DNA of 64,000 nucleotides. Origin: Hypanus sabinus. Taxonomy: Eukaryota. The stretch covers positions 34,472,001-34,536,000 of the forward strand of contig NC_082712.1 in NCBI RefSeq assembly GCF_030144855.1, written 5' to 3'. The notes under the pieces were generated by a model. It saw nothing but the letters and a program-made list of their open reading frames with translations, searched no databases and had not been told where the DNA came from. Positions 2,280 through 26,407 of this stretch are shown here, in pieces. Numbering within the stretch: position 1 is the stretch's first letter; the number at the start of each line of letters is the position of its first letter. Both the position numbers and the translations under genes were made by a program.

Positions 2280-5200
2280 GATGAAACAATACTTCTCCCA
2301 AATACAATAAAATGTGCCTCTCCAAAAAAGGAACCTGCAAAGATGTGCAAACAGCCGGAGGTTCTACCGCAAGAGTTCTTTCCAGAAGATTTAGTAAAAA
2401 TTGAGGTTTGGACTTGATTAGCAGATCTAGTAAAACCATATGTATATTTGTCTCAAATCTTGGCCTTTGGTCATCTGGAGCATAGAGGATTGAAATAAAA
2501 TGAATTCCTGTTTTTGGAAATTCATTCTACAATTTAATTAAGATTGATTAATTATTGATGGAAAATCTTGTACCCTTGGGATTTGAGGTTGTGATCCTGA
2601 GAATTTAGCTGTGGGATTTTTCCTGTCTACAGACTTTTTTAAATGGGGAAAATTAATCCTTGTACTATTTTTAAAACTTTGCAATTTATTAAAACTGCAG
2701 TTTTACAGCTTTGTGTGAAGGATTTCTCTTTAGAAAGTATCCAAGTTAGACGGACTCATGATTTTTTTAACATTCCTTTTTTCCTTAAAAGGAAGAATTT
2801 CTTTAGCTAATGAAAGTAGTATCTGACAAATGCTTAGATGCTGCTTGTTCTGAAGCACTGTTCTTAGTGAACAATTGGTTTAACACTTGTACAAACTGAA
2901 ATATTCAGAAAGGTGTTTTGGTGGAGGGTTTGTGGTATTGGTGCTGGGCTCAAAGGATTGGAATGACTTTGTCGTCTAGAGCCACTCTCTAAAGACAGAT
3001 TATATTAATTTTTCATTTTTGAAGGAACATGTAATTAAATTCAAAACTGACTTGAATGTTCAATTAGAAATTTAAAATGCAAGGTGCTGGCCCTATGTCT
3101 AAGTTGTCACTTCCTATAACATTGCAAATACTATACAGGTACCACCAACTCCAATGGACATTTCAATGTGCGTGTCAGAAGAACTGTGTGATGCCTTCTC
3201 AGTCTCAATCCTTCCTGTTGAAGATGTTGATATAAATGATGGCAACAACCCAGTACTCTGCAGTAACTACGTTAAAGATATCTACAAGTATTTAAGACAA
3301 CTAGAGGTTGGTCTTTCTCTGAACTTTAAAGTGGATCTAAAGCACTACAGTACAAACCACAGAATAGTCTATTAATTATGAGGAGAAATTGAGACATGGG
3401 TAAAAACTTTTTTAATCCTTGGACCTTGAATTTAGAATGTAACTCTGGGCTATTAGCTGGCTAAAGAAGTGTGCCTATAAATCAGTGGCAAAAATAGCAA
3501 ACTTCTGGAAGATGTCAATGGATCAGGCTGCTTCTATGAAGGGCACGAGCAATTGATGGTTTGGTTCAAAACTCTTTATTTGTTCCAGGTGGAGTGTCTC
3601 AAGCCAAAGCTTGGACTGCCCATTTTCTTCCTGACCCACCAAGCTCCCCCAGCATTTGTTGTTTGCACCAGATTCCAACATCTGTAATCTTGCCTTTAAA
3701 CCAAATGGACCTGAAGTCTTAAACACTGTTGCTCCATCTTTTACATTACTTAGATTTCTAAGCTTGTGTAAGATGGAAAATTTGTAGCTGGATTTGAAGA
3801 GGTAGGATTTGTGGACATGAGGTAGCCAGGATCTTGGAGCAGCCTAGGACTTTCAGTTAACCTGACCAGTAGCAAATGAAGTTTTGATAAAAGATGTGCT
3901 GTACTGTTTTGTATGGGATGAATTATTTTCCAGAGGGAGGCAACTATGAATATGCTGCTGAGGTAATTTCCAAGAAACTGCCAAGTTCCAAGAACTGTCC
4001 TGTTTCTTTGAGCTATATGGTTGTTGTGGAAAACACTGAACTGGTGGCAAAGGTGTATCCGGTAAGAGCATGTTGCAGCAAAATTATGACAACTAAGTGG
4101 ATATTTGCTTGAGCACTTGGGTTATTGAATGGGGCTTAAATGGATAAGTCTTGCCTAATGATTAGGATCTTTCTGTGGAAAGATGTGATTAAATGGCCTG
4201 AAAGATGGCTTGTTTATTTGGTATGTAGCTTTCTTGGTTGTGAAGTGCTCAAAGATGAGTATGCACTAGCTTCTATTACTGAAGTCTGGCATAACATTTC
4301 ATAAATCACTACTGTCATTCAGGCTATTCTAATACATTACTCAAGTGCTTTCAATATGGTTGAAGTTTCCAATTCTCTCTTAAAATTGAAAATCCTACCA
4401 AATTGTCATGAATCACCAACTTTTGTAGCTTTATTACTAAAGTACATGACTGGTCCTTCCTCATACAGGTTGAGCAAGCAGTGCGACCAAACTACTTGGC
4501 TGGGCAAGTGATAACTGGAGCTATGCGTGCTATCTTAATTGACTGGCTTGTGCAAGTTCAAGTAAAATTTAAGCTACTTCCAGAAACGCTCTACATGACT
4601 GTGTCCATCTTGGACAGGTTTCTCCAGGTAAGGATTCCTGAGGGGAAAATGGACTATTATTCATCTGTGCAAACTGCCCAACTACGCATCTATTTTGGTC
4701 CATGGATAAGCACTTGAAAGAAAGGTACTATTTAAAATACAAATGGAGTGAGCATTTTTCAAAACAATAACTTGTTTCTGAATTGAGTCTGGCATGACCA
4801 TGAATTGAGTATATAATGATTTCTAACTTTCCAATTTTTAAAAAATAAGCTTAATTGTGAATAGCTCTAATTCTTGGATGAAATAAATGTTACCAATACA
4901 ATCAAAGGCAGAAGAAATTCTGAATTTTTGTTCATTATAGATTACTTTTCTTAGGATAACCCAGTAACCAAGAAAAATCTGCAACTTGTTGGAGTCACGG
5001 CAATGTTTATTGCTTCTAAATATGAAGAGGTTTATCCTCCAGAAATTGGGGACTTCGTCATCATCACTGATAATGCTTATACTACTGCTCAAGTACGTCA
5101 AATGGAGAGGTGGATATTGAAGAAACTCTGCTTTTCTCTTGGCAAGCCAGTTCCACTGCACTTCCTCAGAAGGGCATCAAAAGTTGCAGATGTAAGCATT

Positions 5201-7378
5201 TTCCTATAATTTGATGGCTTTGACAAAATGTTGGTTTTAATATCCCAGAAGATGGCCTCACACGATCAATATAGAACAAATTGAGCTTTTCCAACAGTGA
5301 ATGTCCTGTTGTAAGCATGTTGGTAGATCTACCAGTAATTGTGATTGTTAAACTGTATCTTGTGTATTCTTGTTTCCACATTTCCATGAATTCTGTATGG
5401 TTAAGAGCTGTGCAGTATGACATCTCCATGATCAACTTTCATGATTAACTAGTGGAACATTTCAAGTTGCATTACCTGATATTTAACCTCTTGATGTAGG
5501 TTAGTGCAGAACAACATGCTCTTGCCAAATACCTAATGGAACTGACAATAGGGGATTATGACATGGCACATTATCCTCCATCCCTGATTGCAGCAGCGGC
5601 CATCCACCTTGCTCAGAAACTCTTTAACTCTGGTGAATGGGTGAGTACCTTGAGTATTGACAATAATTCTGGTTTGAACCAATGCATGTTCAAAACATAG
5701 ACAATAGACAATAGGTGCAGAAGTAGACCATTCGGCCCCTTGAGTCTGCACTGCCATTCTGAGATCATGGCTGATCATTCACTATCAATACCCAGTCCCT
5801 GCCTTGTCCTAGTATCCCTTGATTCCCCTATCCATCAGATATCTATCTAGCTCCTTCTTGAAAGCATCCAGAGAATTGGCCTCCACCGTCTTCCGAGGCA
5901 GTGCATTCCACACCTCCACTTCTCTCTGGGAGAAGAAGCTCTTCCTCAACTCTGTTTTAAATAACTGACTTATTCTCAATCCATGCCCTCTGGTACTGGA
6001 CTCTCCCAACATCTGGAACATATTTCCTGCCTTAATCCTATCAAATCCTTTAATTATCTTAAACGTTTCAATCAGATCCCCTCTCAATCTCCTCAATTCC
6101 AGCGTGTACAAGCCCAATCTCTCCAATCTCTCGGCGTAAGACAGCCCTGCCATCCCAGGAATCAACCTAGTGAATCTATGCTGCACTTCCTCAATTGCCA
6201 GAATGTCCTTCCTTAAACCTGGAGACCAAAACTGTACACAATATTCCAGGTGTGGTCTCACCAGGGCCCTGTACAAATGCAAAAGGACATCCTTGCTCTT
6301 GTACTCAATTCCCCTTGTAACAAAGGCCAACATTCCATTTGCCCTCTTCACTGCCTGTTGCACTTGCTCATTCACCTTCATTGACTGGTGAACTAGGACT
6401 CCTAGGTCTCTTTGCATTCCTCCCTTACCTAACTCTACACTGTTCAGACAATACTCTGCCCTCTTGTTCCTGCTTCCAAAGTGGATAACTTCACATTTAT
6501 TCACATTGAATGACATCTGCCAAGTATCTGCCCACTCACCCAGCCTATCCAAGTCTCCCTGTATTCTCCTAACGTCCTCTTCGCATGTCACACTGCCACC
6601 CAGTTTAGTATCATCAGCAAACTTGCTGATATAGTTTTCAATGCCCTCATCTAAATCATTGACATAAATCGTAAAGAGCTGTGGTCCCAATACAGAGCCC
6701 TGTGGTACCCCACTAGTCACCTCCAGCCAGTCCGAGAAACACCCATTCACTGCTACCCTTTGCTAATCATTGTTGTTTTTAGACTCCCCTCTTGCAGTAT
6801 TACCTCTCGTATGAAGAAGAGGATTTGCTTCCAGTTATGCAACACATAGCAAAAAATGTTGTCCAAGTCAATAACGGTCTCACCAAGCATATGGTAAGTT
6901 TAAAACTTGAGCTAGCTTGGTAACAGTTGACATTTTTCAAAGTGGGTCTTTAGTTGAATTTGGCACATAACATCCTTGCCTGCAGTGGAGAAAAATGCCT
7001 TTAAGAATCCAGAAGAGCCTTCTGACTGAACTAAATGTTCAAACATTTTGCCAAATGTTCAGTCAATGTGCTGCACTGTTCAGTCTTGTCAAAAATCCAG
7101 TGTTTCAATTAACTGGATGCAGACATGCGGTAGTGCATAAACAAGAATGCAGAAATTTATTTAGTCTAAATAAATGCCTCAGACAATACAAATGTTTTCT
7201 AAGCTGCATTAACCATAATTTTAGCAAGCCAGACTTTTATAAATTGAAACTCTTTTCTTTCGTGCAGACTGTTAAGAACAAATATGCTAGAAAGAGTGAA
7301 CTAAGGATCAGCACCATCTTGCAACTGACATCAGTCCTGATTTTCAATTTGTCAAGATCACTAATCTCCAAACAATAA
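2280..7378 (+). CDS. ccnb1: G2/mitotic-specific cyclin-B1, 5'-partial (7 exons in window; D-box exons lie upstream)
   Basis: Exons 2280-2405 (least certain), 3139-3306, 4469-4627, 4955-5191, 5500-5640, 6783-6893, 7268-7378 (TAA); all AG/GT bounded, all phase 0. Translation has EELCDAFS (NES/CRS region), [29 protein letters not shown] (cyclin box), [35 protein letters not shown] and VKNKY. B1-type [10 protein letters not shown] and a downstream cenph support B1 over B2. Confidence 0.95.
5696..6764 (-). mobile_element. Young, 5'-truncated CR1 LINE (RT C-terminus plus 3' tail) in a ccnb1 intron
   Basis: Uninterrupted 313-aa ORF 5809-6750 ([36 protein letters not shown]). Microsatellite tail ATAGACAATAGACAATAG at ~5697-5714. 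Confidence 0.95.
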
Positions 7379-8217: not shown

Positions 8218-9782
8218 CACTGGTGCTAGGAAGTTTGTGGACCCATAGAATTTTCTATTTCTGCACAAATGACTGAACTGTGATCAGATCTTCATGCAAA
8301 TCCTAAAACTAGATAGAGAACCCAATTGAATAACACAGTCGTTTGTTTAGTGAGGAAAAATGAACCAATATTTCGTGTATTTGGGGAAAAAATGTGAACC
8401 TTTGCTTTCAGTAACTGGTGTCACCCCTTGTATAATAACTTCAACCAAACATTTACAGTAACTGTTGATCAGTCCTACACATTGGCTTGGAGGAAATTTA
8501 GGCCATTCCTCCTTGCAAAACTGCTTCAACTCTGGGATGTTGGTGGGCTTACTTGCACGAACTGCTTGATTTCAGGTCTGTCCACCACATTTCTATAGGA
8601 TTAAGAACTTTGGGCCATTTCATAATACAATTTTATTTAAACCATTCTGTTGATTCACTCTTTAAGATCACTGTCTTGTTGCATTATTCAACTTCTATTA
8701 AGCTTCAGGCGACAAACTGCTGCCCTAACATTTTCCTGTAAAATGCCTTGATACAATTTCAAATTCATCGCTGAATTTGATGAATTCATCGATTCATTGC
8801 TCCCTCAATGATTGCAAGCTGTCCAGTCCCTGAGGCAGCAATGCCACCATGCCTCACATTTGAGATGGTTTAGTATTGGTGTGCAGTGCCTGTTTTCCTC
8901 CACACATAGCAATGTGCATTTCTGCCAGAAAGTTCAACTTTTCTCTCATCCATCCAAACACAGAACATTGTCCTAGAAGCACTGTAGAACATCCAGGTGG
9001 TCTTTTGCAAGTTTGAAATGTGCAGCAATGTTTTTTATTAGAGCATTAGTTTCCTCTATGGTGTCCTTTCATAAGCCCCATACTTATTTGGTGTTTTCTT
9101 TTGTGGACAGAGACTTTAGCAAGTTCTAAGGTTTTCTGATGGGACTTCTGTTCTTACCCCTGGGTTCTTTTTCATCTTGGTGTTATCTTTGCAGGATGGC
9201 CACTCCTGGCAAGAGTACAGAGTTTCTACCATTTGCAGACAATTTCTCTTGCTGTGGACTGAAACACTACAAATGTTTTTGTAGCCTTTTACAGCTCCAT
9301 GCAAGGCTACTATTCTTCTAGGGTCATCAAAGTTCTTTTGATGGGGGCATGGTGACATGCACAGATTTCTCTTGAAGAGCAGGCTCTGACAGTAACGTGA
9401 CTTCCTCCTTTTTCTGTCAACAGTATCTTGCCCAGTGTTTCAAGTCCCCATCAAATAACTGCCTCGATGGGGAGGCTCTCCGCTTCCACAATCCTGTTGC
9501 GTAGTGTCTTCCATACTTCAACTGCCGCCCGGATAAAAATCTCATCTCATTAATTGGAACACCTGACTCCAAATAATTTTTGAAGGCATTACCTCAGAGG
9601 TTCGTACTTTTTCCAACAAATACGTGGAATAGTATTTGTTGATCATTTTTCTCAACAAAAACATACTATTTTATTTAATTGAGTTCTCTCTAGTTTTAGG
9701 CCTTACGTGAGATCTGATTGGGTCATATTTACGCGGGAATAGATAAAATTCTGCAGGGTTCACAAACTGTCGGACGAACTAG
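8218..9782 (-). mobile_element. Degenerate Tc1/mariner DNA transposon
   Basis: TA flanks (8216-17, 9783-84). Imperfect TIRs: AGTTTGTGGACCCATAGAATTTTCTATT at the left end versus the reverse complement of AATAGATAAAATTCTGCAGGGTTCACAAACT at the right. Transposase C-terminal remnant KQFCKEEWPKFPPSQCVGLINSYCKCLVEVI at 8347-8529. Confidence 0.85.
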
Positions 9783-9899: not shown

Positions 9900-10620
9900 T
9901 GTTTTAAGCCTGTGCTAGGCAACTTCCAACTAAATCCCAACGCTACTTGGCAACCACATGAAACAAATGCCGAAATTTGAGCTTACCTTTGATAAATGTT
10001 GGAAATCCAGTTCACTTGATTGAAACGCTCCCTCGAATGGACTTCCAGACTTCTAGATTTAGGATTAAACACGGCAGAGGGCATGGTTTCGGGATAGATT
10101 CTGGACTTCACTAAATATCGACAGCAATCTGCAAGCGATGTCTCGACCGCTCGGCAATCGGAAGAAGAAAGTGACATTTGGGGAGCAACTAACTTACCGT
10201 GAGTTACCAAACACCGTCTGACGCTGGCGTGGATACAGGTGATGGGACTGTTTGGGTTTTCCAGTGCACTTTTCTTTTAACTCTAATAGCCCGCTTAATT
10301 TTCTTTATGGTCTGATGGCAATGACAAAGTTCGTACCACCCCTTGCAGTATTTGACAATCCTCATATCCGTCTCCAGGTCAGGCCACGGCAGAAAGCGCT
10401 CATCGCCATGGCAATGCGATCCGGTCCCACTTCGTTTTCCTTCTCAAAGAGCTAAAGTTATCTTCTCCCTTTTACCGGGCTTTGAAGGAGAAGGATGTCG
10501 TAACCACCGAGCAAGTGGGACAGATTGAGGTAAAGTTATATTGCATGTTATTTTGTCCCGTTGAACTTTGAGTCGCGAGCAGTTCTCGGGTCAATAGACA
10601 AGCAGACGCCGCTCTGCAGT
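9900..10620 (+). promoter_or_regulatory. CpG-enriched promoter/first-exon region of the CARD-coiled-coil gene with two RFX X-box-like sites
   Basis: Local rise in CpG density around exons 1-2. TGTGCTAGGCAAC 9911-9923 and GCTACTTGGCAAC 9942-9954 resemble RFX X-boxes (GTTGCCnnGYAAC). Confidence 0.55.
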
Positions 10621-13600
10621 TTTAACCTTAAAATTTCTTGTACAGGTGAACTTCCCCGTTGTTGACTGCAGAGAGTCCTAGCAAATATGAAAGTGTTACA
10701 ACGCACCCCCTTGTTTTACACCTGTTATTCTTTGTAACTTACTAATAACAAATTTTCCTACTTGCAAATCATTTTCATGACCTCTTTGCTTTGTTCCTCT
10801 CCCCCCCCCCCCCGGTATTTTGTGACAAGTGATCGTACAGTTTAAAAGATGCAGCTTGGAAGTACAGTACTGAGCTCGGTTATTTTTACAGCAACGATTA
10901 CCGGGGCGATAGCAAATTAAGAAGGGGTTGGATTCTGATGTGAGCTCTATCTCTGTAATAGCCCGCAATCATAAGTTATTCTGGGTCCATTGAAATAAGG
11001 AAACTCATCTTGACTGGCAGCTTTTCGGAATCTTCTGCAAATAAGATCCATCACCAATAATGTATAACCAGTTTATAAAATATTCGTCCGGTTCCTAATA
11101 GAACATCATGTAAAAAAATAATGAACTCTATTGTATTGGAAACAGAAAGTGCTGAAAGTAGACATAATTTGTAGCCAGTTCATGATTGAAACTTAACTGA
11201 ACAGATATGGCTCAGAGGTAATATCATTTTCTAACCCCTTCACATATGGTGGCAGGTCGATGACATATTTTGGGGAAAATATCAATGCTATTTGAGGTTG
11301 TAACCCTCACACTAGGTAAGTCCATGTATAAGATCTCAACCAATATCAGAAAGGAGAATTTTTTTTTTTACACAAATTCTCACACAAGGGACAGGCGTTA
11401 TCATTTTAGCAACCTTGGGTAAATGTCCAGTTGGAAACTGTGGACTGAATATTATGAAGATAGTTTGGGAATATATATGTTTCTCTAGAATGGCAACAAC
11501 TGGGCACAACAGTACAGGATTTTGTTTATTTTTGGGGGGATGTGGGCATCACTGGAATAACCAGCACTTACTGCCTTTGAGAAGGTGGTGCTGAGCTGCT
11601 GCCTTGAGTCACTACAGTCGTTCGGGTGAGGATGTTCCCGTAGTGCTGATAGACAGGAGTCCAAGATTCATACCCTATGATGACAAAGGGTCAATAACAT
11701 TTCAAAATTGGGGTGGTGTGAGGCGTGGAGGGGAGCCTGCAGGTAGTGCTGTTAACATCTGCCTGTCTCCCCCCTTGGTTGTCTTAATAGTAGAGGTCAT
11801 GCTACTGGGGGAGCACAACATGCTAGTGCCTCAGTTGTGGAAATGAACATCTAGATGGTGTACGGGGTGCCAATTGAGGAAGTTGCTCTGTCCTGGGTGG
11901 CATCAAGTGACCGGGATTTTGTTGGAGCCACAATTATCTGGCAAAGTGGAGAGTATGTAATCATTCTCATAATTGTGCCTTATAGAGTGTGAAAAGGCTT
12001 TGTGGTGTTAGGAGGTGAGTCACTCGCCTCAGGATACTCAGTCTCTGACCCACTCTTGTAGCTACTGTTGTAAGTGGCTGGTTTAGTTGAACTTCAGGAT
12101 CTGTTGCTGGGGCAATGGAAATGACACTGAATTGAAAGAGTATGGGTTTTGACTCTCTTTTTGGAGCTGATCATTGCTCAGCCCTACCTTAAAGTTCATT
12201 CAGTCCTGCTGCAGGCAGGGAGGCTTTGTTTACTGAGGGATTGGCAATGGAAATGAATGTGGTACAATCCTCAGGAATTGTCATACTTGTATGTCACACT
12301 ATAGACCTAGTAACGGAAGGAAGATAATTGATTAACCAGTTGAATATGCTTGAGTTTAGTTCCTCCACACCGTCTGCTATGGAAGGGCTACTACACAGGA
12401 CCGAAAGAAGCTGCAGAAGGTTGTAAATCTAGACAGCTTCATCTTGGGCACGAGCCTGCAAAGTACGCAGGACATCTTTAGGGAGCGGTGTGTCAGAAAG
12501 GCAGCGTCCATTATTAAGGTCCTCCAGCACCCAGGGCATGCCTTTTCTCACTGTCACCATCAGGTAGGAGATACAGAAGCCTGAAGGCACACACTCAGCA
12601 ATTCAGGAACAGCTTTTTCCCCTCTGCTATCTAGTTCCTAACTGGACATTGAAGCTTTGAACACTACCTCACTTTTTTAATATACAGTATTTCTGTTTTT
12701 GCACATTTAAAAAACCTATTCAATATATGTAATTGATTTAATTGTTTCTTTACTATGTTTTATAATTTTTTTTCTCTGCTAGATTACCTATTGCATTGAA
12801 CTGCTGCTGCTAAATTAACAAATTTCACATCACATGCTGGTGATAATAAACCTGATTCTGATTCTCTTGAATGGTTCTGGGACTGAGGTGGTTGATTTCC
12901 CAAAGCCACTTTCATTTGCGTGATATATGAATCTAACCGTTGCAACCTATTTTGTCCTGTAGCCCATTGGCTTCGGCATTAACAAGCTCCTTGATGCAAC
13001 ACTCAATCAGATGTTGCTTTGATTGTCCAGGGCAGTTACTCCTGTAGAATTTAGTTTGCGAGTTCATGTTGGAACCAATGCTCTGGAGAGAGATGAACCA
13101 GTGAAACACAACTTGGACAACAGTGATGGGGTTTTTCATGCTGTTTGATTCTAAAGATATATTTATACCCTAAAGCTTCACTTAATTGGGAATGAGATGC
13201 CAATTTTTCAGGTTTTCATAACTTTGGAGCTAATTTTGTTCCTCTGAGATCATTGATTTGCAATTATGAAGCAGCAAAATTCAAGTGATCAGGTGCAAGA
13301 AAAGACGGGACAGAAAGGGAGGGTAATGTAGCAGGATTCTCTTTTGAGTCAGTATGGGTGGAAGTCAGGAACAGGAAGGGAGCAGTTACTCCATTGGGAG
13401 TATTCTATAGGCCCCCTGGTAGCAGCAGAGATACTGAGGAGCAGATTGGGAGGCAGATTTTGGAAAGGTGCAAAAATAACAGGGTTGTTATCATGGGTGA
13501 TTTTAACTTCCCTAATGCTGATTGGCACTTGATTAGTTCCAATGGTTTAGATGGGGCAGAGTTTAAGTGTCCAAGATGGATTCCTGTCACAGTACATTGA

Positions 13601-16600
13601 CAGGCCGACTAAGGGGAATGCCAAACTAGATCTAATATTAGGTAACGAACTGGGTCAGGTCACAGATCTCTCAGTGGGTGAGCATCTGGGGGACAGTGAT
13701 CACCACTTCCTGGCCTTTAGCATTATCATGGAAAAGGATAGTCAGAGAGGACGGAAATTTTTAATTGGGGAAGGGCAAATTATGAGGCTATAAGGTTATA
13801 ACTTGTGGGTGTGAATTGGGATGATGTTTTTGCAGGGAAATGTACTATGGGCATGTGGTCGACGTTTAGGGATCCCTTGCAGGATATTAGGGATAAATTT
13901 GTTCCAGTGAGGAAGATAAAGAATGGTAGGGTGAAAGAACCATGGGTGACAAGTGAGGTGGAAAATCTAGTCAGGTGGAAGAAGGCAGCATACATGAGAT
14001 TTAGGAAGCAAGGATCAGATGGGTCTATTGAGGAATATAGGGTAGCAAGAAAGGAGCTTAAGAAGGGGCTGAGAAGAGCAAGAACAGGGCATGAGAAGGC
14101 CTTGGCGAGTAGGGTAAAGGAAAACCCCAAGGCATTCTTCTTTTATGTGAATAACAAAAGGATGACAGGAGTGAAGGTAGGACTGATTAGACATAAAGGT
14201 GTGACGATGTACCTGGAGGCTGTGGAAGTGAGTGAGGTCCTCAATGAATACACCTCTTTGGTATTCACCAATGAGAAGGAACTTGATGATGGTGAGGACA
14301 ATATGAGTGAGGTTGATGCTCTGGAGCATGTTGATATTAAGGGAGAGGAGGTGTTGGAGTTAAAATACATTAGGACGGATAAGTCCCTGGAGTCTGACGG
14401 AATATTCCCCAGACTGCTCCACAAGGCGAGGGAAGAGATTGCTGAGCCTCTGGCTAGGACAGTCATGTCCTCGTTGTCCACGGGAATGGTACCGGGATGT
14501 TGTCCCCTTGTTCAAAATGGATAGTAGGGATAGTTCGGGTAATTATAGACCAGTGAGCCTTTCGTCTGTGGTGGGAAAGCTGTTGGAAAAGATTCTTAGA
14601 GGTAGGATCTATGGGCATTTAGAGAATCATGGTCTGATCAGGAACAGTCAGCATGGCTTTGTGAAGGGCAGATTGTGTCTAACAAGCCTGAAAGAGTTCT
14701 TTGAGGAGGTCACCAGGCATATAGATGAGGGTAGTGCAGTGGATGTGATCTACATGGATTTTAGTAAGGCATTTGACAAGGTTCCACACAGCAGGCTTAT
14801 TCAGAAAGTCAGAAGGCATGGGATCCAGGGAGGTTTGGCCTGGTGGATTCAGAATTGACTTGCCTGCAGAAGGCAGAAGGTCATGGTGGAGGGAGTACAT
14901 TCAGACTGGAGGGTTGTGACTAGTGGTGTCCCACAAGGATCTGTTCTGGGACCTCTAATTTTTGTGATTTTTATTAATGACCTGGATGTGGGGGTAGAAG
15001 GGTGGGTTGGCAAGTTTGCAGACGACAAAGGTTGGTGGTGTTGTAGATAGTGTAGAGGTTTGTCGAAGGTTGCAGAGACACATTGATAGGATGCAGAAGT
15101 GGGCTGAGAAGTGGCAGATGGAGTTCAACCCGGTGAAGTGTGAGGTGGTACACTTTGGAAGGACAAACTCCAAGGCAGAGTACAAAGTAAATGGCAGGAT
15201 ACTTGGTAGTGTGGAGGAGCAGAGGGATCTGGGGGTACATGTCCACAGATCCCTGAAAGTTGCCTCACAGGTAGATAGGGTAGTTAAGAAAGCTTATGGG
15301 GTGTTAGCTTTCATAAGTCGAGGGATAGAGTTTAAGAGTTGCGAGGTAATGATGCAGCTCTATAAAACTCTAGTTAGGCCACACTTGGAGTACTGTGTCC
15401 AGTTCCAGTCGCCTTACTGTAGGAAGGATGTGGAACCATTGGAAAGGGTACAGAGGAGATTTACCAGGATGCTGCCTGGTTTAGCGAGTATGGATTATGA
15501 TCAGAGATTAAGGGAGCTAGGGCTTCTCTCTTTGGAGAGAAGGAGGATGAGAGGAGACATGATAGAGGTGTACAAGATATTAAGAGGAATAGACAGTGGA
15601 CAGCCAGCGCCTCTTCCCCAGGGCACCACTGCTCAGTACAAGAGGACATGGCTTTAAGGTAAGGGGAGGGAAGTTCAAGGGGGATATTAGAGGAAGGTTT
15701 TTCACTTAGTGGTTGGTGTGTGGAATGCACTGCCTGACTCAGTGGTAGAGGCAGATACACTAGTGAAGTTTAAGAGACTACTAGACAGGTATGTGGAGGA
15801 ATTTAAGGTGGGGGGTTATATGGGAGGCAGGGTTAGAGGGTCAGCACAACATTGTGGGCTGAAGGGCCTGTAATTGGCGATACTATTCTAAGTTCAAACA
15901 ACTGTGTCTTTCATTCTGTATTTCCTTACATCAGAAGTTATTGTGTAATGTACAACTGGAAATGTAATAAACATGGCTTTAAAGTAAAATTTAAGAAGTC
16001 AAATAAATTAAAACTGTTAATTGGTGCTCCGTGCAGTTAGAAAACTTGCCAGAACTGAAGGTGGCCAAACTACTTGAGATTGTTCAAAATGCTGATAGCC
16101 ACGTATTCAAGTCATTTTGCCGAGTTCTTGGTGAGATGGGATACTGGTACCTAGCGCAGAGTCTTCAAACTGCCTCTGAAGAGAAAAAATGGACATCTTC
16201 TACAGGTAAACAACAAGATGAAGTGAACTGGATTCTTCAAATTTTGGTGTGACTAAAATTCAAAAATAATTTGTCCTAATAATCTTTTTAAGTCTTATAA
16301 TTGTTTTCCTAAACAGAATATGCCTTGCATCAGTGAATTTTAATTTACAATTATTTTGGGTATGTTTTATTTTTATAAATCCTTTTTACTGTTTTTCAGG
16401 ATAAGATCAACAAACCATAAATACAACTTTAACTATAAAAATTCTTCTTTCTGTCCACTGCACCACTTAATCTGTGTTTGTTATTTTGGATAAGTTTTCA
16501 ATGCCAGTGGATAATTAAAATCAAGTTGGCAAGATTCAACACACCTACATAGTTGATGTTAAGGTTTTTTAAAAACTTAAAATCACACGGTCTTCATGTC

Positions 16601-19600
16601 TTTATAAATAAAATTCAAGGAGTTAGCCTACTTTTGAACAATATTAACCTAATTCCTTTCTTATCACATGTCTGTACTCTCAACATTTTTTGTTTCCATT
16701 TTGAATAGGAAGGTAATTGAAGTTTACAAACCATTAGCACCTCAACAATTGTTTCTGTAAATAAAAAAAAAAATTGGCAGACTTGCACAAAATGGCAGGC
16801 TTCCACTTGATTTAAGCAGCTCCTCTGCCTGCCTGAACTTCTCTCCTTGTTTTGCTCTAAGTTTTTTTTTAATTTGTAAGCTACATCACCTATCCAACAT
16901 TCTATCAATTTTCTTTTGTCCGTGTGGAATCAAGGTGCCTCCAAGTCAACACAGCTGACAGTGAGAGACTGGAACTTAGTGAAGCTCCATCATCCAATCC
17001 TTGAGCCAGGTAGGTTTAGAAATTTATATTGTTGGACTCAACAGTGAACCTTGAGACTGTAAGTTGCGTAGGAGTAGGATCTGCCTGAAAGTGAGGTTGG
17101 AACTGCTTTTCCTTAAGTGTTGGGTTGGGGTCATTGAGGCAAACCTGAGAAGTTAGTTCTGCCTGAGTGACAGCTGGCTGTATTAAGTCATAGGTAGTGT
17201 CCAATAGCCTCATCTTAGAATGGAGGAAGGTGCTACGTTTTAGGCCAAAAAGCTATTATGAAAATGCTCATGAAGAGGACATGGCATATAATCTTGAAAG
17301 GATACTGACTAGAATGTTAAACCTGATCTTTTCCACTTTATACCAGGAAAAAGTAAGTAATTTACAAACCTTGTATTAGAAGTAGAAATTATATTGGTCA
17401 ACAATGTAAATAGTAAGACTGCATCTGTAGTGGGTTAAACAATAGTCAGAAAAGTAAAAATTAATATACTTTTACATTTAATGTCTGATTTTTAAATAAG
17501 CTGATATGCAAAGACACCTGAAGTTATGAATGACCTGACTTACAGAAATACAAATTCTGCAAATTTTCCTAGATTTTTAAAGCATTTTTCAAGCTAGTAA
17601 TAATAATGATAAAATATTCCTCAATTCATTAATGACAGAATATATATTCCATTTGTTTAACTGTGAGTAGTATAGCAAGTGTAAATAATAACAATATGGG
17701 TTCCCATAGAAAACTAATCTTTCTAATTTACAGAAAAATGGCTTGAGGACAATTCTCATGAATGAAACCCATACATGATCTGGTGACTGTATTGGATTTG
17801 TGCCTACATTTCTAGATTTGAAATTTCTATTTAATAAAATTATAAGCTTCTGATGCTCCTTTTGTATGATCATTAACAAAAAATAAATATATATTGGAAG
17901 CGTATAATTTTATGAAAGTTTATACTATGATACAATTGGAGGCTGTTTAGCCCAAGCCCAATAAGGAAATGGCATCAATTTCACTCCTCCTCGTAATTCT
18001 TTGTAATCAATTCTTTGTCCCAACAATTCCACTCCTCCCCTCTTGGTTCTCCTGCTACCACCTGCATGAGGGATAATGTATAGAAGCTAGCTAACTTGCC
18101 ATTCTGCTTGTGGGATGTGGGAGGAGGGGAAATCCAGGGAGAATGCTGAGGGGGGGGGGGAAATGTTGACCGATAATTATTTTATTTACATTATTTCTCC
18201 ACAACTATTTGCACGCGAGTTTGCTAACTTTATATTAAATATTTAATTTTACCTTGTAGAACATATGTCTATATACGATAAGCAGCGCTTGAAAGAAAAC
18301 TTTCTGCTTTCCAAAGAAGCTAATAAAAATCTAAAGGAAGACAACCTGGAGTTGGGTCAAAAAGTGATACTTATGAGGGAAGAATATTTACAAAGGTAAA
18401 TCAGAAATATGTTATTTTCAAAATATTGAAGTACACAAGTAGTAGTGCTGATGATGGGGCAGTTAGTATACAAGAAATGTAGTGAGATTGTGAGGAAGAA
18501 CAGGCAGCTGATAGGGAATAATTGCAGTCAGTGGGATGAGTTGAAGTGTAACATGGCACAAACTCGGAGTGAGAATACAGGACTACAAGTGTTATATTTG
18601 AATGCACGCCATATACAGAATATGATTATCTTGAAGAGATTTGCAGGTATGACATTGTGCGCATCACTGAGACATGGCTAAAAAGATCATATTTGGGCAT
18701 TTAACATCCAAGGACACACTGTGGCTCTGTTGGTAAAGACAATGAAATCAAATCCTTAGAAAGAGGTGACATAGGATCAGAAGATTCTAACCTTGTGGGT
18801 AGAGTTAAGAAACTGCAAGGGCAAAACAACTCTGATGGGAATTGTATACAGAACCCCAAACAGTAGCCAGAATGTGGGATACAAATTTCAACATGAAATA
18901 GAAAAGGCATGTAATAAGGGCAATGTTATGACTGTCATGGGGGATTTCAATATGCATGTAGATTAGGAAAATTAGGTTGGTGCTGGATACCAAAAGAGGG
19001 AATTTATAGAATTCCTACAGGATTTTTTTTTTTTTTTTTGGAACAGCTTGTGTTTGAGCCCACTAGGGGAAAGGCCATTCAGGATTTTGTATTGTGTAAT
19101 GAACCAGATTTGGTTAGGGAGTTTAAGGTAAAGGGATCCTTAGGAGACATTGATAATAATATGATAGAATTCATCCTGCAGTTTGAGGGAGAGAAGGTAA
19201 AGTTAGATATATTAATATTACAGTGAAGTAAAGGACTTTAGAGGCATGAGAGAGGGTATAGCCAAAGTTGATTGGCAGGGATGATGGCAGAACAGTATTG
19301 GCTGGAGCTACTGGTGGTAATTTAGAAAGCTCAGATAGATACTATACGCCCCAAGGATGAAGTATTCTAAAGGGGTGATGAGGCAACTGTGGCTAACAAG
19401 GGAAGACAAAGACAACATAAAAGAAAGAGAGGGCATATAATAAAGCAAAAACTAGTGGGAAGTTAGAGGATTAGGAAGCTTTTAAAATCCAACAGAAAGC
19501 AAGTAAAAGACTATAAGGAGAGAAAAAGTAAAATATGAAGGTAAATGGCCAAAAATATTAAAGAGGATAACTAAAGTTTTTTTTAGATAGACCATAAGTA

Positions 19601-22600
19601 ACAGAAAGATGAATGGATATTAAACTACTGGAAAATCATACTGGAGTGATGGTAATGATGGACAAAGAAATGGCCGACTAACTTTGTCAGTCTTCACTGT
19701 GAAAGACACTAGCAGAACACCAGAAATTCTAGAGTGTCAGGAGGCAAAAGTGGGTGTATTTGCTATTACTAAGGAGAAGGTACTTGGGAAGCTGAAAGGT
19801 CTAAAGGTAGGTAAGCCACATGGACCAGATGGACTACACTCCAGATTTCTGAGATGGATAACTGAAGAGATTGTGGAGGCATTAGTAATGATCCTTCAAG
19901 AATCACTAGATTCTGATATGGTTCTGGAGGACTGGAAATTTGCAAAAGTCACTCCACTCTTTAAGAAGGGAGGGAGGTGGAAAAAAAAGGAAAACAATAG
20001 GCCAAGTTGGCCTGACCTCAGTGGTTGGGAAGATGTTGGAATCCATTATTAAGGATGAAGTTTCAGGATACTTGGAGGCACATGATAAAATGGGCCAAAT
20101 ATAGTATAGTTTCCTTAAAGGAAAATCTTGCCTGACAAATCTGTTGGAATTCTTTGAGGAAAAAAGAGGCAGGATAGACAAAGAAAAGTTGGTGGATATT
20201 TTTTACTTGGACTTTCAGAAGGCTTTTGACAAGATGCTGCACAGGAGACTGCTTAACAAGTTAAGAGCCTATGGTGGTACAGGAAAGATACTATCATGGA
20301 CAGAAGGTTGGCTGACTGGCAGGATACAAGGAGTCGGAACAAGGTGGGGGGCCTGTTCTGGTTGACTGCTGGTGACAGGTGGTATTCTGCGGGGGTCGGT
20401 ATTGGAACCACTTCATGTTATACTGTTTGTCAATGACTTGGATGATGGAATTGATGGCTTTGTGGCCATGTTTGCAGATGACACAAAGATGCATGGAGGG
20501 GCAGGTAGCTTTGAGGAAGCAGGGAGTCTACAGAAGGACTTGGACATATTTGGAGAATAGGCTAGGAAGTAGCAGATGGAACATAGTGTAGAAAGGTGTA
20601 TAGTCATGCACTTTGGTAGAAGGAATAAAGGTATAGAGTATTTTCTAAATGGGGAGAAAATTTAAAAAACAGATGCAAAGGAACGGGAGTCCTTTTGCAG
20701 GATTCTCTATAGGATAACTTGCTGGTTGAGTCAGTAGTGAGGAAGAAAATTGCAATGTTAGCATTCATTTCGAGAGGACTAGAATACAAGATAAGGATGT
20801 GATGCTGAGGTTTTATAATGCTTGGTCAGACTGCACTTGGAGTATTGTAAGCAGTTTTGGGCCACATACCTAAGAAAACATGTGTTGCCATTAGGTCCAG
20901 AGGAAAATGATTCTGAAAATGAAAGAGTTAAGACTGAGAAGTGCTTGATGACTCTGGGCCTGTACTCACTGGAATTTAGAAGAATGAGAGGGGTCCCATT
21001 GAAGCCTATTAAATATTGAAAGGCCTAGACAGTAGATGAGGAGAGCATGTTTCCTATAGTGGATGAGTATAGGACCAGAAGGCACAGTCTCAATAGAGGG
21101 CCATCCATTTTGAACAGAGATGAGAGGAATTTCTTTAGCCAGAGGCTGGTGAATCTGTGGAACTAAATGCTCCAGACAATTGTGGAGGCCAAGTCAATGA
21201 GTATATTTAAAGGAGAGGTTGAAAGGTTCTTGGCTAGTTGGGGAGTCAAAGGCAGGAGAATGGGGTTGAGAAGGGTAATAAATCACCCATGGTGGAATAG
21301 CAGAGCAGACCCAATGGGCAGAGTAGTCTAATTCTGCTGCTATATCTAATGGTCTAAGTTTAATGACATGAGCTAGAAGGTACAAGCAGATGGTCCCTCT
21401 CTCACCCACTCACCCACCAACCAGGTCAGGCAGCATCTATGGAAAAGAATAACGATTCAACACTTGAATGGATGCTACCTAACCTGCTCCAGTGTTTTGT
21501 TCCTCCAGATCTTCAGTATCTGCAGATTCTTTTATGTTTATGAAGCAGATGGAGTAAATGTGGGAAAATAAGGCAATTCAAAGTGATAATGGAAACAGAA
21601 GAAATATATAAAAGATAAAGCTAATAAAGAGCTGTGGTGGAGAGGATCTTGGCATGCTGGTCATGAAATGCAGGAAGTAAATATGTTGCTATCTCATGCA
21701 ACTAGGAAGGCAAATTGTATGTTAATCTTCATTGTAGGTAGAATAGGAACACTAATGTACAGTAATCTTGCTGAGATTGTACAGGCTCTCTAAGATCTCT
21801 TTGGAAGAAATGTATGTAATTTTTATCACTGCATTCAAAGAAAGATTTGCATGCTTTGAAAACAGTGCAGCTTAGGCTCGTCAGACCTAAGATGGAGCTA
21901 CCTAATGAAGAGAGATTCAAATTGACCCGCACTCACTGAAGTAAGTCATTGACATTGTGAATGGCAGACCACTCTGCAAACACTATTTTACTGACTCCTA
22001 TCTGTTTCTTGAGTCCTTATAAATGCACTCATGCTATACTGCATTTTTACACTCAATGTTATTCTTTCCAGTTTTCAACAATGGTGAGTTTGCATTGCAG
22101 TGCTAAATATCGCAGCAAATTGAAAATGGAAGACCACAATCCAGATATACAGTACTTCCCAGTTCTGGAGCAACATCAACAGAGATTTACAGACAATAGT
22201 AATAATTATAAGAGCAGAGAAATAGGTCATTTGGCCTAACATGGCCATGCCGCTGTTTTTGCCCACCTACACTAATATAATTTGCCTCTTTTAGGCAAAT
22301 CTATGTCCTACCTAGCTATTTTCCAATGAAAATGCTTAATAAACATAGATATTCTGTCTCATTCCACTGCCATATCCTCTGGCACTACTTTCAAGTTATT
22401 AACAACTTTCTGTGGGGGGAGAAAAAACTTGCCCCTCACATCTTTAAAATTCCTTCCTCATGTTAAGTCTATGCCACCTTTTTTTTATGGTCCCTATATA
22501 TATGCCTTGTAATTTTATATACTATCAGGTCATCCCCTGGCCTCCTTCACTGAAGGGAAAACAAACCCAGCCTATCTAAAATTCCCCATTACTGAGCCCC

Positions 22601-25600
22601 CCAGTTTCTGCTGACATTCTGGTGAACCTCTTCTGCACTCTGTCTAGTTTGTCACATCTTTTCTACAGTGCAGCAATCAGAACTGCATACAATACACCAA
22701 GTGCAGCCTAACCAGTGTTTTGCAGAAATGCAACATAGCTTCATAACTCTTGTATTCTTTGTCCTATCCTGTGAAGGCAGGCATGCCTTATGCCTTCATT
22801 GACCTCTCGACCAGTATTGCTGCTTTCAGGGAAACATGGACTTGGAGCTGCAGGCATCTCATCAACATTTCTTGGTTCACTACCATTTATTGTATGTGTC
22901 CCATCATAATATGATTTCTCAAAATGCATTACCTTATGCTTGTTAGGATTAAATTCCATCTGCCAATACTCTATAAACTTTTCATCAGATCTGTATGCTG
23001 CTACAGCCTTAAACTACCTTCCTCACTCTCCCGAACAACACTAATGTCAATTTAAAATTGTTCCCAATGAAGCCCAGGATGTCTTGCATCTATTTTATTT
23101 AACTAGGCAATGTGTCTATGACGAAAGGTTTGCCCAATAAATTATTCAAATTGGATTGCAATTCTACATATTTCAAATGTCCTGGTTAATTCGGTGGTTG
23201 CCTAACTGATCCAATACGTAGCCCAGGGAAAATTTGTGGCTCTGCTGACTATGCTGCAAAATTAAACCAATTCACACGTGGCTTATATCCCTCTCTGCCT
23301 GTCTCAATATCCCTTAGACATTGCTATCATATCTGCTTCCCTCAGTTCCCCTGGCAGTGCATTCTAGACACTAATCACCTGGTGGTTAAAAATAAATCTT
23401 GCTTTGCAAGTCTTTAAACATTTCCCCTTCTCACCTGACTGGAGTTCTGTGACCATTCAGCCCACTGCACTGCCATTCTATTATGGCTTATTTATTATCC
23501 CTCTCAATCCTATTCTCCTACCTTCTCTCCACAACCTTTGACACCCTTGCTAATCAAGAAACTACCAACTTTTGCCTTAAGGACTTGGCTGTCATAGCTG
23601 TCTGTACAGCAATGAATTCCACAGGTTCACTATGTTCTGGCTAAAGAAGCTCCTTCCTATCTCTGTGTTAAAGGGACATGTTGGTATTCTGTCCTCTCTA
23701 TGCAGGCCTTTCAATAAGAACTCCCTTATTCTTCTAAACTCCAGTGAATATAGGCTTAGAGCCATCAAACGATTCTCATACGATTGATGGTGGGACCTCT
23801 GCTTGTGATATATACTGTATCTGATTTGATTGAAAACATAGATCAGTGGGTTAGTAACTTTGAAACAAAGATTGCTGGAGTTGTAGCGTGTAATAGGCTG
23901 TCAAAGGGTACTGCAGAATATGGGCAGAAAAATGGCAGATGTAGTTTAATCTGAGCAAGTGTGAGGTGTTGCACTTTGGGAGGTGTATTTAATAGTAGTA
24001 CCCTTAGGAGCTTTGTACAGGAGGATCTTGGCATTCCAGTCCATAACTCGCTGAATGTGGCCATGTAAGTAGATGGGGTGGTAAACAAGACATATGACCT
24101 GCTTTCTTTGCCACTTTCATTGGTCAGAACTTTGAGTATGATTCAGGAATTCATATTGCAGCTATATAAAACTTTGGTCAGGCCCACTTGTAGTATTGTG
24201 TGCAATTCTGGTCACCCCATAAAGGAAGGATATTGGGGTTTTGGAAAAGTACCAAAAAAAAGGTTTATCAGGATGCTACCTAGATTAGAAAGTATGAGCT
24301 ACATGGACAGGTTGGACAAACTTTGGTTGTTTTCTCTGGAGTGTTGGTGACTGAAGGAGACCTTATAGAAATGTATAAAATTATGAGGGGCATAGATAGT
24401 TAAATCTGTTTCCCACAGCAAAAATGTAACAGAGGATATGTATTTAAGGTGAGAGGCTTAAAGGGGACGTGCGGGCAAGTTTATTACACAGAATAGTATG
24501 TGCCAGGAATGGGCTGCCAGGGATAGTGATGAAAGCAGGTATGATAGCAGAATTGAAGAAGCTTTTAGAAGCATGAATAGGCAGAAAATAGAGAGATTAG
24601 AATCCCATACATGGCAGAAGAGGCATTGTTTGGTGCAGACATTGTGTTGTACTATTCTATGTTCTATAATTCAAGTTCTCTAGTCTTGGCAACATCTTTG
24701 TGGATGATTTCTGCACATATCATATCATTCCTATATTGTAACCAAGACTGCATACAATTTTCGAGGTGCAGTCCCACAAGTCTTTTACAGCTGGAATATG
24801 ATCCCATTATAATGACATTGAATGTGAAGTTGTTGTTATGGCATCTCTCACCAGGTGTTCTGTCTCTCTCTTATACACTGACTCATCGTCACTGTATTCA
24901 ATACCTCATTCAATGGGGACATGTGCCATATGTCATCTTTTCCAACGTGTCTGTCTATGCCACCATTTTAAGGGAACTATGCACCTGTACTGCTAAATCA
25001 TTCTGTTGAACAACATTCTCAGGCTGTCATTCACTGTATATCCTGACATCATTTAACATCCCAAATCAAATCACTTCACACTTGCCTGAGTTAAACTCCA
25101 CCTGCCCCTCCTTTCCTACTTGATCTAAATCTTGTTGTAACCATAGACAATTTCCTTTCTGTCCACTATACCACCAATTTTGGATATCATCTACAAACTT
25201 ACTAATCAGGCCACCTACTCATCCAAATCATTAATGTGTAACAAATGACAGTGACCTAGCATGACAGTGAAGTACAACACTGGAAAATCAACCAATGGCT
25301 CTCCACCACCACCTTCTGACTCTTTCCACCAAGCCAATTCTGTATCCAGTTAGCTAGCTCACCCAGTGATCTCACCTTTTGGAACAGTCTACCATGTCTG
25401 TCCTTCTCAAAAGCCTTACTACATTCCGTATAGATATCTACCATCCTGCCTTAGTCAATCCTTAAGGTTACTGACCTCTTCAAAAAACAAATGAGAGAAT
25501 TTCCCACAAACAAAATCATGCTGTTTATTCCTAATCACCATGGTAGAGTAGTAGTTAGCACAACAGTTTACAATACTAGCAACCCAGCTTCAATTTCTGC

Positions 25601-26407
25601 CGCTGTCTACAAAGTTTTGTTCTACCCCTGACTGTGTGGGTTTCCTCCAGGTGCTCTAGGTTTTCTCCCACAGTCCAAAGACACTGGTTGGATATTAATT
25701 GGTTATAGTACATTATCCTGTGATCAGACTAGAGTTACATTGGGGGTTACTGGGTAGTGTGGCTTGAAGGGCCTATTCTGTGCTGTATTGCAATAAATAA
25801 TCACTCCTCCAAATGCTGTTTCTCAGAATCTCCTCCAGTGACATTGGGGTCAACTTTCCTCACACCATTGATTCTTGTGTTATCTGCTAAATTGCTAATC
25901 AGGCCACTTACTATCCAATTCCTTTTTGAAAGTCTTGTTTCTTCTATCATTAATCTAGGGACATGAAATGAACTCACAAATGAAGAAACTTTAAATTGGG
26001 AAGGAAGAATAATTAATAAAATTGATATTGGTCTAACATTTTTCCCCTTTAATTACTTTTCTCTTTCACAATTAGCATGTTTAATACTGCATTTATATAA
26101 TTAGGACAAGGGTTTTCTTGTGACTATATTTAACAGGTTGCAAGTACTTGAAGAAGAATTGGCTTCCGTGACTCATGAAAGAGATACAAGTGTGAAGGAA
26201 CGTAATATCACAATCCTGGAAATTAAAGAACTACAAAATCTCAACCATGAACTTCAGGAGCTAATAATAAAGCTTGAAAATTCTAAGATTAATGCTACAC
26301 ACAAGTATCCTAAATACAGTGTTGAGATGGTCCCTGTACCACCATTGACTGATGGGCAAATAAGTCTGCTGCTTACCTTCAATCAATATGGACAAATAAG
26401 TGATTAA
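10138..26407 (+). CDS. Uncharacterised RVxF-CARD-coiled-coil protein (262 aa; 287 aa with a probable extra exon)
   Basis: Exons 10138-10198, 10378-10529, 16037-16205, [16935-17009], 18260-18395, 26137-26407. All joins are GT-AG, phases match (1,0,1,[1],2) and there is no internal stop. Protein: [127 protein letters not shown]...[89 protein letters not shown]...GQISD*. AATAAA at 26505-26510. Confidence 0.85.
12361..12864 (+). mobile_element. Rex1/Babar- or L2-type LINE 3' end
   Basis: Near-identical in reverse to 46877-47400. RT C-terminal remnant ([21 protein letters not shown]), with tail AATAAACCTGATTCTGATTCT. Confidence 0.8.
13300..15897 (+). mobile_element. CR1 LINE, near-complete ORF2 with frameshifts, in intron 2 of the CARD gene
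   Basis: Consecutive ORFs 13358-13600 ([15 protein letters not shown]), 13805-14524, 14439-14858 ([37 protein letters not shown]) and 15007-15657 ([12 protein letters not shown]). Confidence 0.95.
18420..21355 (+). mobile_element. Degenerate CR1 LINE
   Basis: Fragments [36 protein letters not shown] and VRLHLEYC, separated by many stops. Confidence 0.9.
22200..25530. mobile_element. Cluster of old CR1 3' fragments in both orientations
   Basis: Remnants [13 protein letters not shown] (22741-22959, -), [10 protein letters not shown] (24078-24350, +) and SKAFEK..WIQNWL (25256-25444, -). Confidence 0.7.
25541..25800 (+). mobile_element. V-SINE (HE1-like) remnant
   Basis: tRNA-like head followed by a V-domain-like core TGTGTGGGTTTCCTCCAGGTGCTCTAGGTTTTCTCCCACAGTCCAAAGAC (~25634-25682). 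Confidence 0.7.

Follow-up and report, generated by a model that had tools for sequence, protein, structure and literature searches.

The DNA analyzed here is a stretch of 64,000 nucleotides from the stingray Hypanus sabinus (contig NC_082712.1, positions 34,472,001 to 34,536,000; hereafter the window), and its subject is a six-exon gene that encodes a CARD protein of 287 residues. We find that the short first coding exon of this gene carries a conserved RVxF-type motif, K10-K11-V12-T13-F14 (10165–10179; exon and reading frame coordinates are window positions on the + strand), a predicted PP1-docking motif with a phosphorylatable residue at x, and we propose that the protein is probably a PP1-interacting adaptor that docks PP1 through this N-terminal motif. 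An original prediction, made from the letters of the window, had read exon 1 as encoding a PP1-docking peptide like those of RepoMan and Ki-67, and had suggested that the protein, encoded next to cyclin B1, could target PP1 to CARD complexes of the caspase-2/PIDDosome type.

The ATG at 10138 opens a first coding exon of 61 nucleotides (10138–10198), which supplies M1 to Y20 plus the first base of codon 21 as a disordered N-terminal peptide and ends in phase 1 at the consensus donor C|GTGAGT. Upstream in the same frame there is a stop codon at 10066–10068, with no ATG between it and 10138. The peptide R8-L18 occupies exactly 10159–10191 within this exon, and the earlier placement of a basic-VTF-GEQL peptide at these positions is confirmed both by translation and by the gene model. 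That model is the only GT-AG solution returned by a search of AG/GT boundaries; it has six exons, and its translation agrees residue for residue with P0037, the RefSeq entry "uncharacterized protein LOC132396481" of Hypanus sabinus (287 residues). The next in-frame methionine after M1 is M105, and because M105 sits inside the CARD a downstream start would cut into the domain. With no in-frame ATG in exon 2 either, an intact CARD requires the exon 1 start, and not a start downstream of exon 1 of the kind against which the original prediction had been hedged.

A single occurrence of such a motif is weak evidence because the pattern recurs by chance in the six-frame translation of the window, where [RK][RK][VI][ST]F is found 3 times in 127,996 residues and a loose RVxF pattern 105 times. 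We followed the motif through 48 database models of the family, 39 of which carry it; 38 orthologs with a canonical N-terminus, 37 aligned N-termini and 20 full-length aligned sequences are the sets referred to below. The core [KR][KR]-V-[TS]-F is present in 38/38 orthologs. In the aligned N-termini V12 and F14 are identical in 37/37, K or R fills both positions ahead of V12 without exception, and position 13 is T in 33 sequences and S in 4, while the columns flanking the motif reach a top-residue frequency of 0.3–0.6. The full-length alignment contains 11 invariant columns, three of which are K10, V12 and F14. Conservation of the V and F in orthologs had been put forward as the check on the original prediction, and it is borne out without exception in the aligned set. 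This conservation places the motif beyond chance and is the apparent signature of selection on the peptide.

At the nucleotide level, a comparison of six species (stingray, sawfish, skate, zebra shark, chimaera and Xenopus) reveals synonymous codons within the motif: GTG, GTC or GTA for V, ACA, ACT or ACC for T, and TTT or TTC for F. Exon 1, its phase and its donor are likewise kept in sawfish, skate, zebra shark, chimaera and Xenopus. The retention of residues across synonymous codon changes, together with the preserved phase and donor, shows that exon 1 is evidently read and translated in this frame.

The published RVxF consensus has a loose form, [RK]x0-1[VI]{P}[FW], and a strict form, [KR][KR][ACHKMNQRSTV]V[CHKNQRST][FW] (PMC4794898), and the stingray KKKVTF fits both. 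Among the orthologs the loose consensus and a five-residue version of the strict form match 38/38, and the six-residue strict form matches 34/38. The patterns of Wakula and Meiselbach also fit 38/38 orthologs, as do those of Hendrickx and ELM in our rendering. That the core is by its sequence a canonical RV[S/T]F-type PP1-docking motif is thus well founded in silico, and the original prediction of such a peptide with basic residues upstream holds across the whole ortholog set. Past the core, the family consensus runs KKVTF-x-E-x-P-hydrophobic-hydrophobic, with an acidic residue at +2, P at +4 and a hydrophobic pair four to six residues past F each occurring in 29/38 orthologs. This downstream pair is compatible with a second contact of the phi-phi motif kind. 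Two other candidate motifs, the cyclin Cy/RxL motif and the 14-3-3 mode 1 site, were rejected, each being found in 0/38 orthologs.

An AlphaFold2 model of the full-length protein, built on 20 orthologs, gives the order disordered N-terminus, CARD, disordered linker, helix of about 94 residues and short tail. Residues 1–27 have no secondary structure and a predicted local distance difference test score (pLDDT) of about 40 (below 50 at 1–10 and 12–27). The first helix begins at residue 28 and opens a helical bundle of the six-helix death-fold type spanning 28–119 with a pLDDT of about 90, after which come the disordered linker (122–156), a single continuous helix (157–250, pLDDT up to 98) and a low-confidence hairpin. 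The predicted disorder of the head should leave the motif accessible to a partner. The only Pfam domain above threshold is CARD (PF00619) at residues 34–115, with 27.6 bits against a cut-off of 23.9. No Peptidase_C14 match was obtained with Pfam in any of eight orthologs, the C-terminal half being occupied by the long helix.

To place the CARD among its relatives we compared a model of this domain by itself (pLDDT 87) with the Swiss-Prot part of the AlphaFold database. The caspase-2 proteins of chicken, human, mouse and rat took ranks 1–4, with E-values of 3–5e-4 (about ten-fold better than that of Apaf-1), 23–27% identity, a template modeling (TM) score of 0.83 and a root-mean-square deviation (rmsd) of 1.6 Å. 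A Foldseek ranking of caspase-2 obtained with the full-length model had aligned disordered tails (rmsd about 20 Å), and the repeat with the CARD-only model kept the ranking. Against solved structures the Apaf-1 CARD gave a Z-score of 15.5 with an rmsd of 1.6 Å over 92 residues and the caspase-9 CARD a Z-score of about 15, and the best natural match in a sequence-profile search of the PDB was the RAIDD CARD (E 7e-5), with NOD1 and Apaf-1 behind it. BCL10 ranks below caspase-2 by E-value, and the CARDs of caspase-1, ASC and NLRC4 fit worse (TM about 0.61–0.66). The CARD thus appears to belong with the apoptotic-initiator group, which lends mild support to the earlier label "caspase-2/PIDDosome-type": the nearest CARDs are indeed those of caspase-2, RAIDD and Apaf-1, at weak similarity. 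A word-based search with the CARD region alone retrieved only the family itself and hence gave no ranking of paralogous CARDs, and a Protein Atlas look-up returned generic CARD clusters only.

Based on these features we propose the following mode of action. V12 and F14 would insert into the hydrophobic RVxF groove of the PP1 catalytic subunit, the CARD would place the bound PP1 on a CARD-containing partner or assembly, and the long helix would oligomerize the adaptor. Phosphorylation of T13 by a basophilic kinase of the Aurora B or PKA type would switch docking off and release PP1, as at T394 of RepoMan and S507 of Ki-67. In those two proteins Aurora B phosphorylates the x residue of the RVTF or RVSF motif, and a phosphomimetic there lowers PP1 affinity about 25–30-fold (PMC5005033). 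The analysis itself establishes the motif, its coding character, deep conservation and predicted disorder, the CARD fold and the synteny with cyclin B; that PP1 binds, that a kinase controls docking and which partner the CARD engages are inferred.

A more specific scenario concerns caspase-2. According to reviews, CaMKII inhibits this caspase through S135 and Cdk1-cyclin B1 through S340, both sites being PP1-sensitive; the regulatory background invoked by the original prediction agrees with these reviews. The Xenopus counterpart of human S340 is S308. In this scenario the protein would be an ancient PP1 regulatory subunit of jawed vertebrates with a death-fold targeting domain that brings PP1 to a caspase-2/RAIDD platform. 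The recruited PP1 would set the phosphorylation state that silences caspase-2 in eggs and mitosis, a mitotic basophilic kinase would switch docking off, and the gene would have been kept in tandem with cyclin B1 for more than 400 million years and lost in amniotes and teleosts. We regard the link to caspase-2 as a testable conjecture, and the scenario as a whole as unlikely.

Several observations weigh against the reading of the protein as a PP1 adaptor, and some bear on its caspase-2 form in particular. The loose RVxF consensus is said to occur randomly in about 25% of proteins (PMC4794898), and because RVxF-like strings are this common the argument for PP1 docking rests on conservation combined with disorder and not on the match itself. 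The stingray protein lacks a clear second PP1 contact, with only L18 and Y20 available for it, and the family orthologs contain no conserved SILK or MyPhoNE motif and no KiR-SLiM. The five residues that fit the docking consensus fit a basophilic kinase site as well, and selection could have acted on that function instead. As for caspase-2, the CARD resembles those of caspase-2 and RAIDD only distantly (E about 1e-4), and this likeness does not tell which protein it binds. According to one review, moreover, PP1 interacts directly with caspase-2 in acting on it, and the known biology therefore does not require a targeting subunit.

The kinase site just mentioned can be taken as an explanation in its own right, namely that KKVTF was selected only as the phosphorylation target of a basophilic kinase (of PKA, Aurora, PKC or AGC type) and so regulates the adaptor, for example its oligomerization or stability, without any docking of PP1. 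The pattern [KR][KR]x[ST]-hydrophobic, an Aurora B/PKA-type site, is found in 38/38 orthologs, and x is always T or S where the RVxF consensus tolerates many other residues (PMC4794898). However, a basophilic site needs neither V at −1 nor F specifically at +1, yet both are invariant in 37/37. In addition, both functions coexist in known RV[ST]F proteins (PMC5005033), and this explanation is largely nested within that of PP1 docking; as an exclusive account of the motif we consider it rather unlikely. Still further down the scale is the suggestion that the basic cluster and V-x-F form a MAPK docking (D) motif or some other kinase-docking element, which we judge very improbable. The general ELM pattern, in our rendering, does fit the stingray peptide and 22/38 orthologs, but it fails in the other 16/38, which have only two basic residues directly before V. 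Phenylalanine is also unusual as the second hydrophobic position, and the invariance of T/S would go unexplained.

We give similarly little credence to a reading of the RKKK run as a nuclear localization signal with V-T-F incidental. The stingray peptide does contain four consecutive basic residues, but the classical pattern K[KR]x[KR] was found in 1/38 orthologs and was rejected, four basic residues out of five occur in 8/38, several frogs keep only two basic residues, and the invariance of V and F would be left without a cause. That exon 1 is untranslated or an artifact of annotation, with the real protein starting elsewhere, is hardly credible. What speaks for it is that the motif is missing from 9/48 models, which begin within the CARD or shortly before it or have unrelated N-termini. 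These motif-less models, however, include named X2 isoforms (e.g. P0038 and P0075), a 151-residue sturgeon fragment (P0003) and unrelated N-termini that look like prediction differences, whereas the residues encoded by exon 1 are conserved despite synonymous changes over six distant species, with phase and donor preserved. The lack of an in-frame ATG in exon 2 and the position of the next methionine within the CARD argue in the same direction. PP1 docking remains the reading that we favor for the motif.

The family was assembled by an exhaustive HMMER scan with exon 3 (a 56-residue query), two word-based searches and a cluster look-up. Orthologs of 221–300 residues were found in sharks, rays, sawfish, skates, chimaera, coelacanth and lungfish, in many frogs, salamanders and one caecilian among the amphibians, and in bichir, reedfish, gar, bowfin and sturgeon. 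Xenopus laevis has two genes, LOC108707279 and LOC121400939. No amniote, teleost, lamprey or invertebrate member was detected by the exhaustive HMMER and word-based searches. The searches picked up frog members that share 47–57% identity with the 56-residue query and should therefore also have picked up an amniote or teleost protein conserved to a like degree; the absence may nevertheless hide an unannotated or much more diverged gene. All members are annotated as "uncharacterized" save one toad fragment, which bears the automatic RefSeq label "caspase-2-like", and a literature search returned nothing on the family or six of its LOC identifiers. Two sets of matches were set aside. HMMER matches made up of multiple stretches (P0001, P0005, P0007 and others) are likely spurious matches to repeat proteins, judging from the multi-stretch pattern, the low identity and the alphaRep matches given by single exons. 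These single exons, compared with PDB sequences, gave only spurious HEAT/alphaRep matches, the pieces being too short.

Downstream of exon 1, the gene continues with exon 2 (10378–10529), which completes the disordered N-terminus and encodes half of the CARD, and exon 3 (16037–16205), which encodes the other half and served as the query by which the family was found. Exon 4 (16935–17009) is a linker segment of 25 codons that only sharks and rays possess. In the 20-sequence alignment it is a gap in chimaera and bony vertebrates, and it is skipped in the sawfish isoform X2 (P0041, 262 residues); it looks like a lineage-specific cassette exon. Exon 5 (18260–18395) contributes the end of the disordered linker and the start of the long helix, and exon 6 (26137–26407) encodes the bulk of this helix (presumed to be a coiled coil) and runs through the conserved C-terminal tail to the stop codon. 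Decayed reverse-transcriptase and endonuclease frames of long interspersed nuclear element (LINE) type, CR1/L2-like, lie at 13289–15870, 18430–21330 and 23580–24350 (+) and elsewhere too. These LINE-like remnants occupy introns 2, 4 and 5 of the CARD gene and account for most of the long open reading frames of the region.

Conserved stretches were also observed outside the motif. Between CARD helices 2 and 3, at residues about 46–52 (window about 10450–10470), an L-[ST]-[ST]-P stretch with the consensus LxLSxPxYRxLKE occurs family-wide; it may have a structural role or form a minimal site for proline-directed kinases. After the long helix, at residues about 250–287 (26137–26404, +), there are two short conserved pieces. 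The first is [DN]LG[FL]SV[DN][FY]LP-like, and the second is a hydrophobic C-terminal tail that reads LLLTFNQ in cartilaginous fishes, HLGLVYR in frogs and LALLFH in coelacanth. AlphaFold2 draws these pieces as a low-confidence beta-hairpin.

Positions 3103–5697 (+), upstream of the CARD gene and on its strand, hold exons of a B-type cyclin. Their best solved relatives are human cyclin B1 chains, with 117 bits as against 66 bits for cyclin A2. In sawfish, skate and Xenopus laevis, too, a cyclin gene in the same orientation precedes the CARD gene by a few kb, and the upstream gene of chimaera matches the cyclin exons of the window at 68–82% identity. Because this arrangement is shared from chimaera to Xenopus, the tandem of cyclin B and CARD gene is ancestral to jawed vertebrates, and the neighborhood with cyclin B1 to which the original prediction had pointed proves to be a conserved one. 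On the other side, sawfish, skate, zebra shark, chimaera and bichir have an opposite-strand gene of roughly 350–420 residues downstream of the CARD gene.

The region between the two genes holds a promoter block, CTGTGCTAGGCAACTTCCA...CTACTTGGCAACCACATGAAACAAA, at window positions 9900–9990, which lie some 240 to 150 nucleotides before the ATG at 10138. The block is conserved from chimaera to stingray and is also present at the locus L001 (about 9710–9765 there) and at the loci L003–L006. Xenopus laevis retains the same pair as TGCTAAGCAAC, about 37 nucleotides and CTTAGCAACC. The pair consists of two copies of YTRGCAAC that resemble RFX half-sites (RGYAAC) and are putative sites of this kind. 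Among cell-cycle promoter elements upstream of exon 1, the stingray has TTTGAA at −332 and −559, with no positional conservation in other species. An upstream open reading frame of four codons (10083–10097, +; ATG GTT TCG GGA TAG) lies 41 nucleotides before the start codon and has an equivalent in sawfish; it is relevant only if transcription begins upstream of it.

PP1 owes its specificity to several hundred docking partners, and CARD adaptors organize cell-death and innate-immune platforms. If the motif binds PP1, the family would be the first death-fold PP1-targeting subunit and a concrete candidate for bringing PP1 to CARD assemblies. The regulation of caspase-2 in Xenopus eggs by CaMKII, Cdk1-cyclin B1 and PP1 would be the obvious place to look. 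The family also illustrates how five residues can remain the best-conserved stretch of a protein over more than 400 million years. That the family has so far received no name may be due to its apparent loss from amniotes and teleosts.

Among known CARD proteins, caspase-2 and RAIDD/CRADD provide the best CARD matches, and the protein described here differs from them in having neither a peptidase C14 domain nor a death domain. The CARDs of Apaf-1 and caspase-9 match its fold as well as those of caspase-2 and RAIDD do (Z 15). Its order of CARD followed by a presumed coiled coil resembles that of the CARD-CC family, which comprises CARD9, CARD10, CARD11 and CARD14 (PMC5978004). The protein is much shorter than CARD-CC proteins (221–300 residues across orthologs) and has a disordered linker of about 35 residues between CARD and helix. 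The CARD9 and CARMA1 CARDs are also more distant (Z about 11–12 versus about 15, 12–19% identity), and no sequence search, whether exhaustive HMMER or word-based, linked the protein to this family. To our knowledge, an N-terminal RVxF motif is not a described feature of CARD-CC proteins. In being small and non-catalytic the protein resembles the CARD-only or decoy regulators (ARC/NOL3, CARD16-18 and ICEBERG), and like them its CARD could compete for or scaffold CARD-CARD interactions. In structure ARC, ICEBERG, CARD16 and CARD18 match less well (Z about 10, TM 0.65–0.67), and we know of no regulator of this type that has an RVxF motif or a long coiled coil.

On the side of PP1, the literature search retrieved no CARD-containing PP1 subunit, and the single paper that mentions both CARD and RVxF is a review on disordered proteins of viral condensates. 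The likeness to RepoMan (CDCA2) and Ki-67 that the original prediction had proposed holds for the RV[ST]F core, the basic lead-in and the Aurora B-type fit at x, but not beyond them. The PP1-gamma-specific binding mode of RepoMan and Ki-67 is defined by the KiR-SLiM, FDxxLP(P/A)N(T/S)PL(R/K)(R/K)Gx(T/S)P, downstream of RVxF (PMC5005033). This element is absent from all 38 orthologs even by the loose pattern F[DE]xxLP, and there is no room for it because the CARD starts about 14 residues past the motif. The peptide R8-L18 aligns to positions 1–11 of the 62 positions of Pfam PF15276 (PP1_bind), scoring 13.4 bits with the 20-residue exon (E 0.09) and 12.5 bits with 30 residues against a cut-off of 27. 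Such a match is given by 1/37 ortholog peptides, that of the stingray, and assignment to the PP1_bind family was rejected as sub-threshold and confined to this species. The GEQL tail, which we take to resemble the GEDL that follows RVTF in RepoMan, is seen in no members other than stingray and sawfish (GGQL) and does not characterize the family. RepoMan and Ki-67 are furthermore chromatin proteins of 1023 and 3256 residues, whereas the CARD adaptor has 287.

The closer comparison is with PP1-interacting proteins at large, and the CARD protein appears better described as a generic RVxF protein. Inhibitor-1 and DARPP-32 carry RKIQF/KKIQF near the N-terminus, which demonstrates that an RVxF-type motif can work within a dozen residues of it; NIPP1 has RVTF and PPP1R15B has KVTF, and generic RVxF motifs often have acidic and then hydrophobic residues downstream. 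The CARD protein differs from these proteins in showing no sequence homology to them beyond the motif. What it shares with them is a short basic-V-x-F in a predicted disordered segment near the N-terminus and, in the consensus of its family, the same acidic-then-hydrophobic look downstream.

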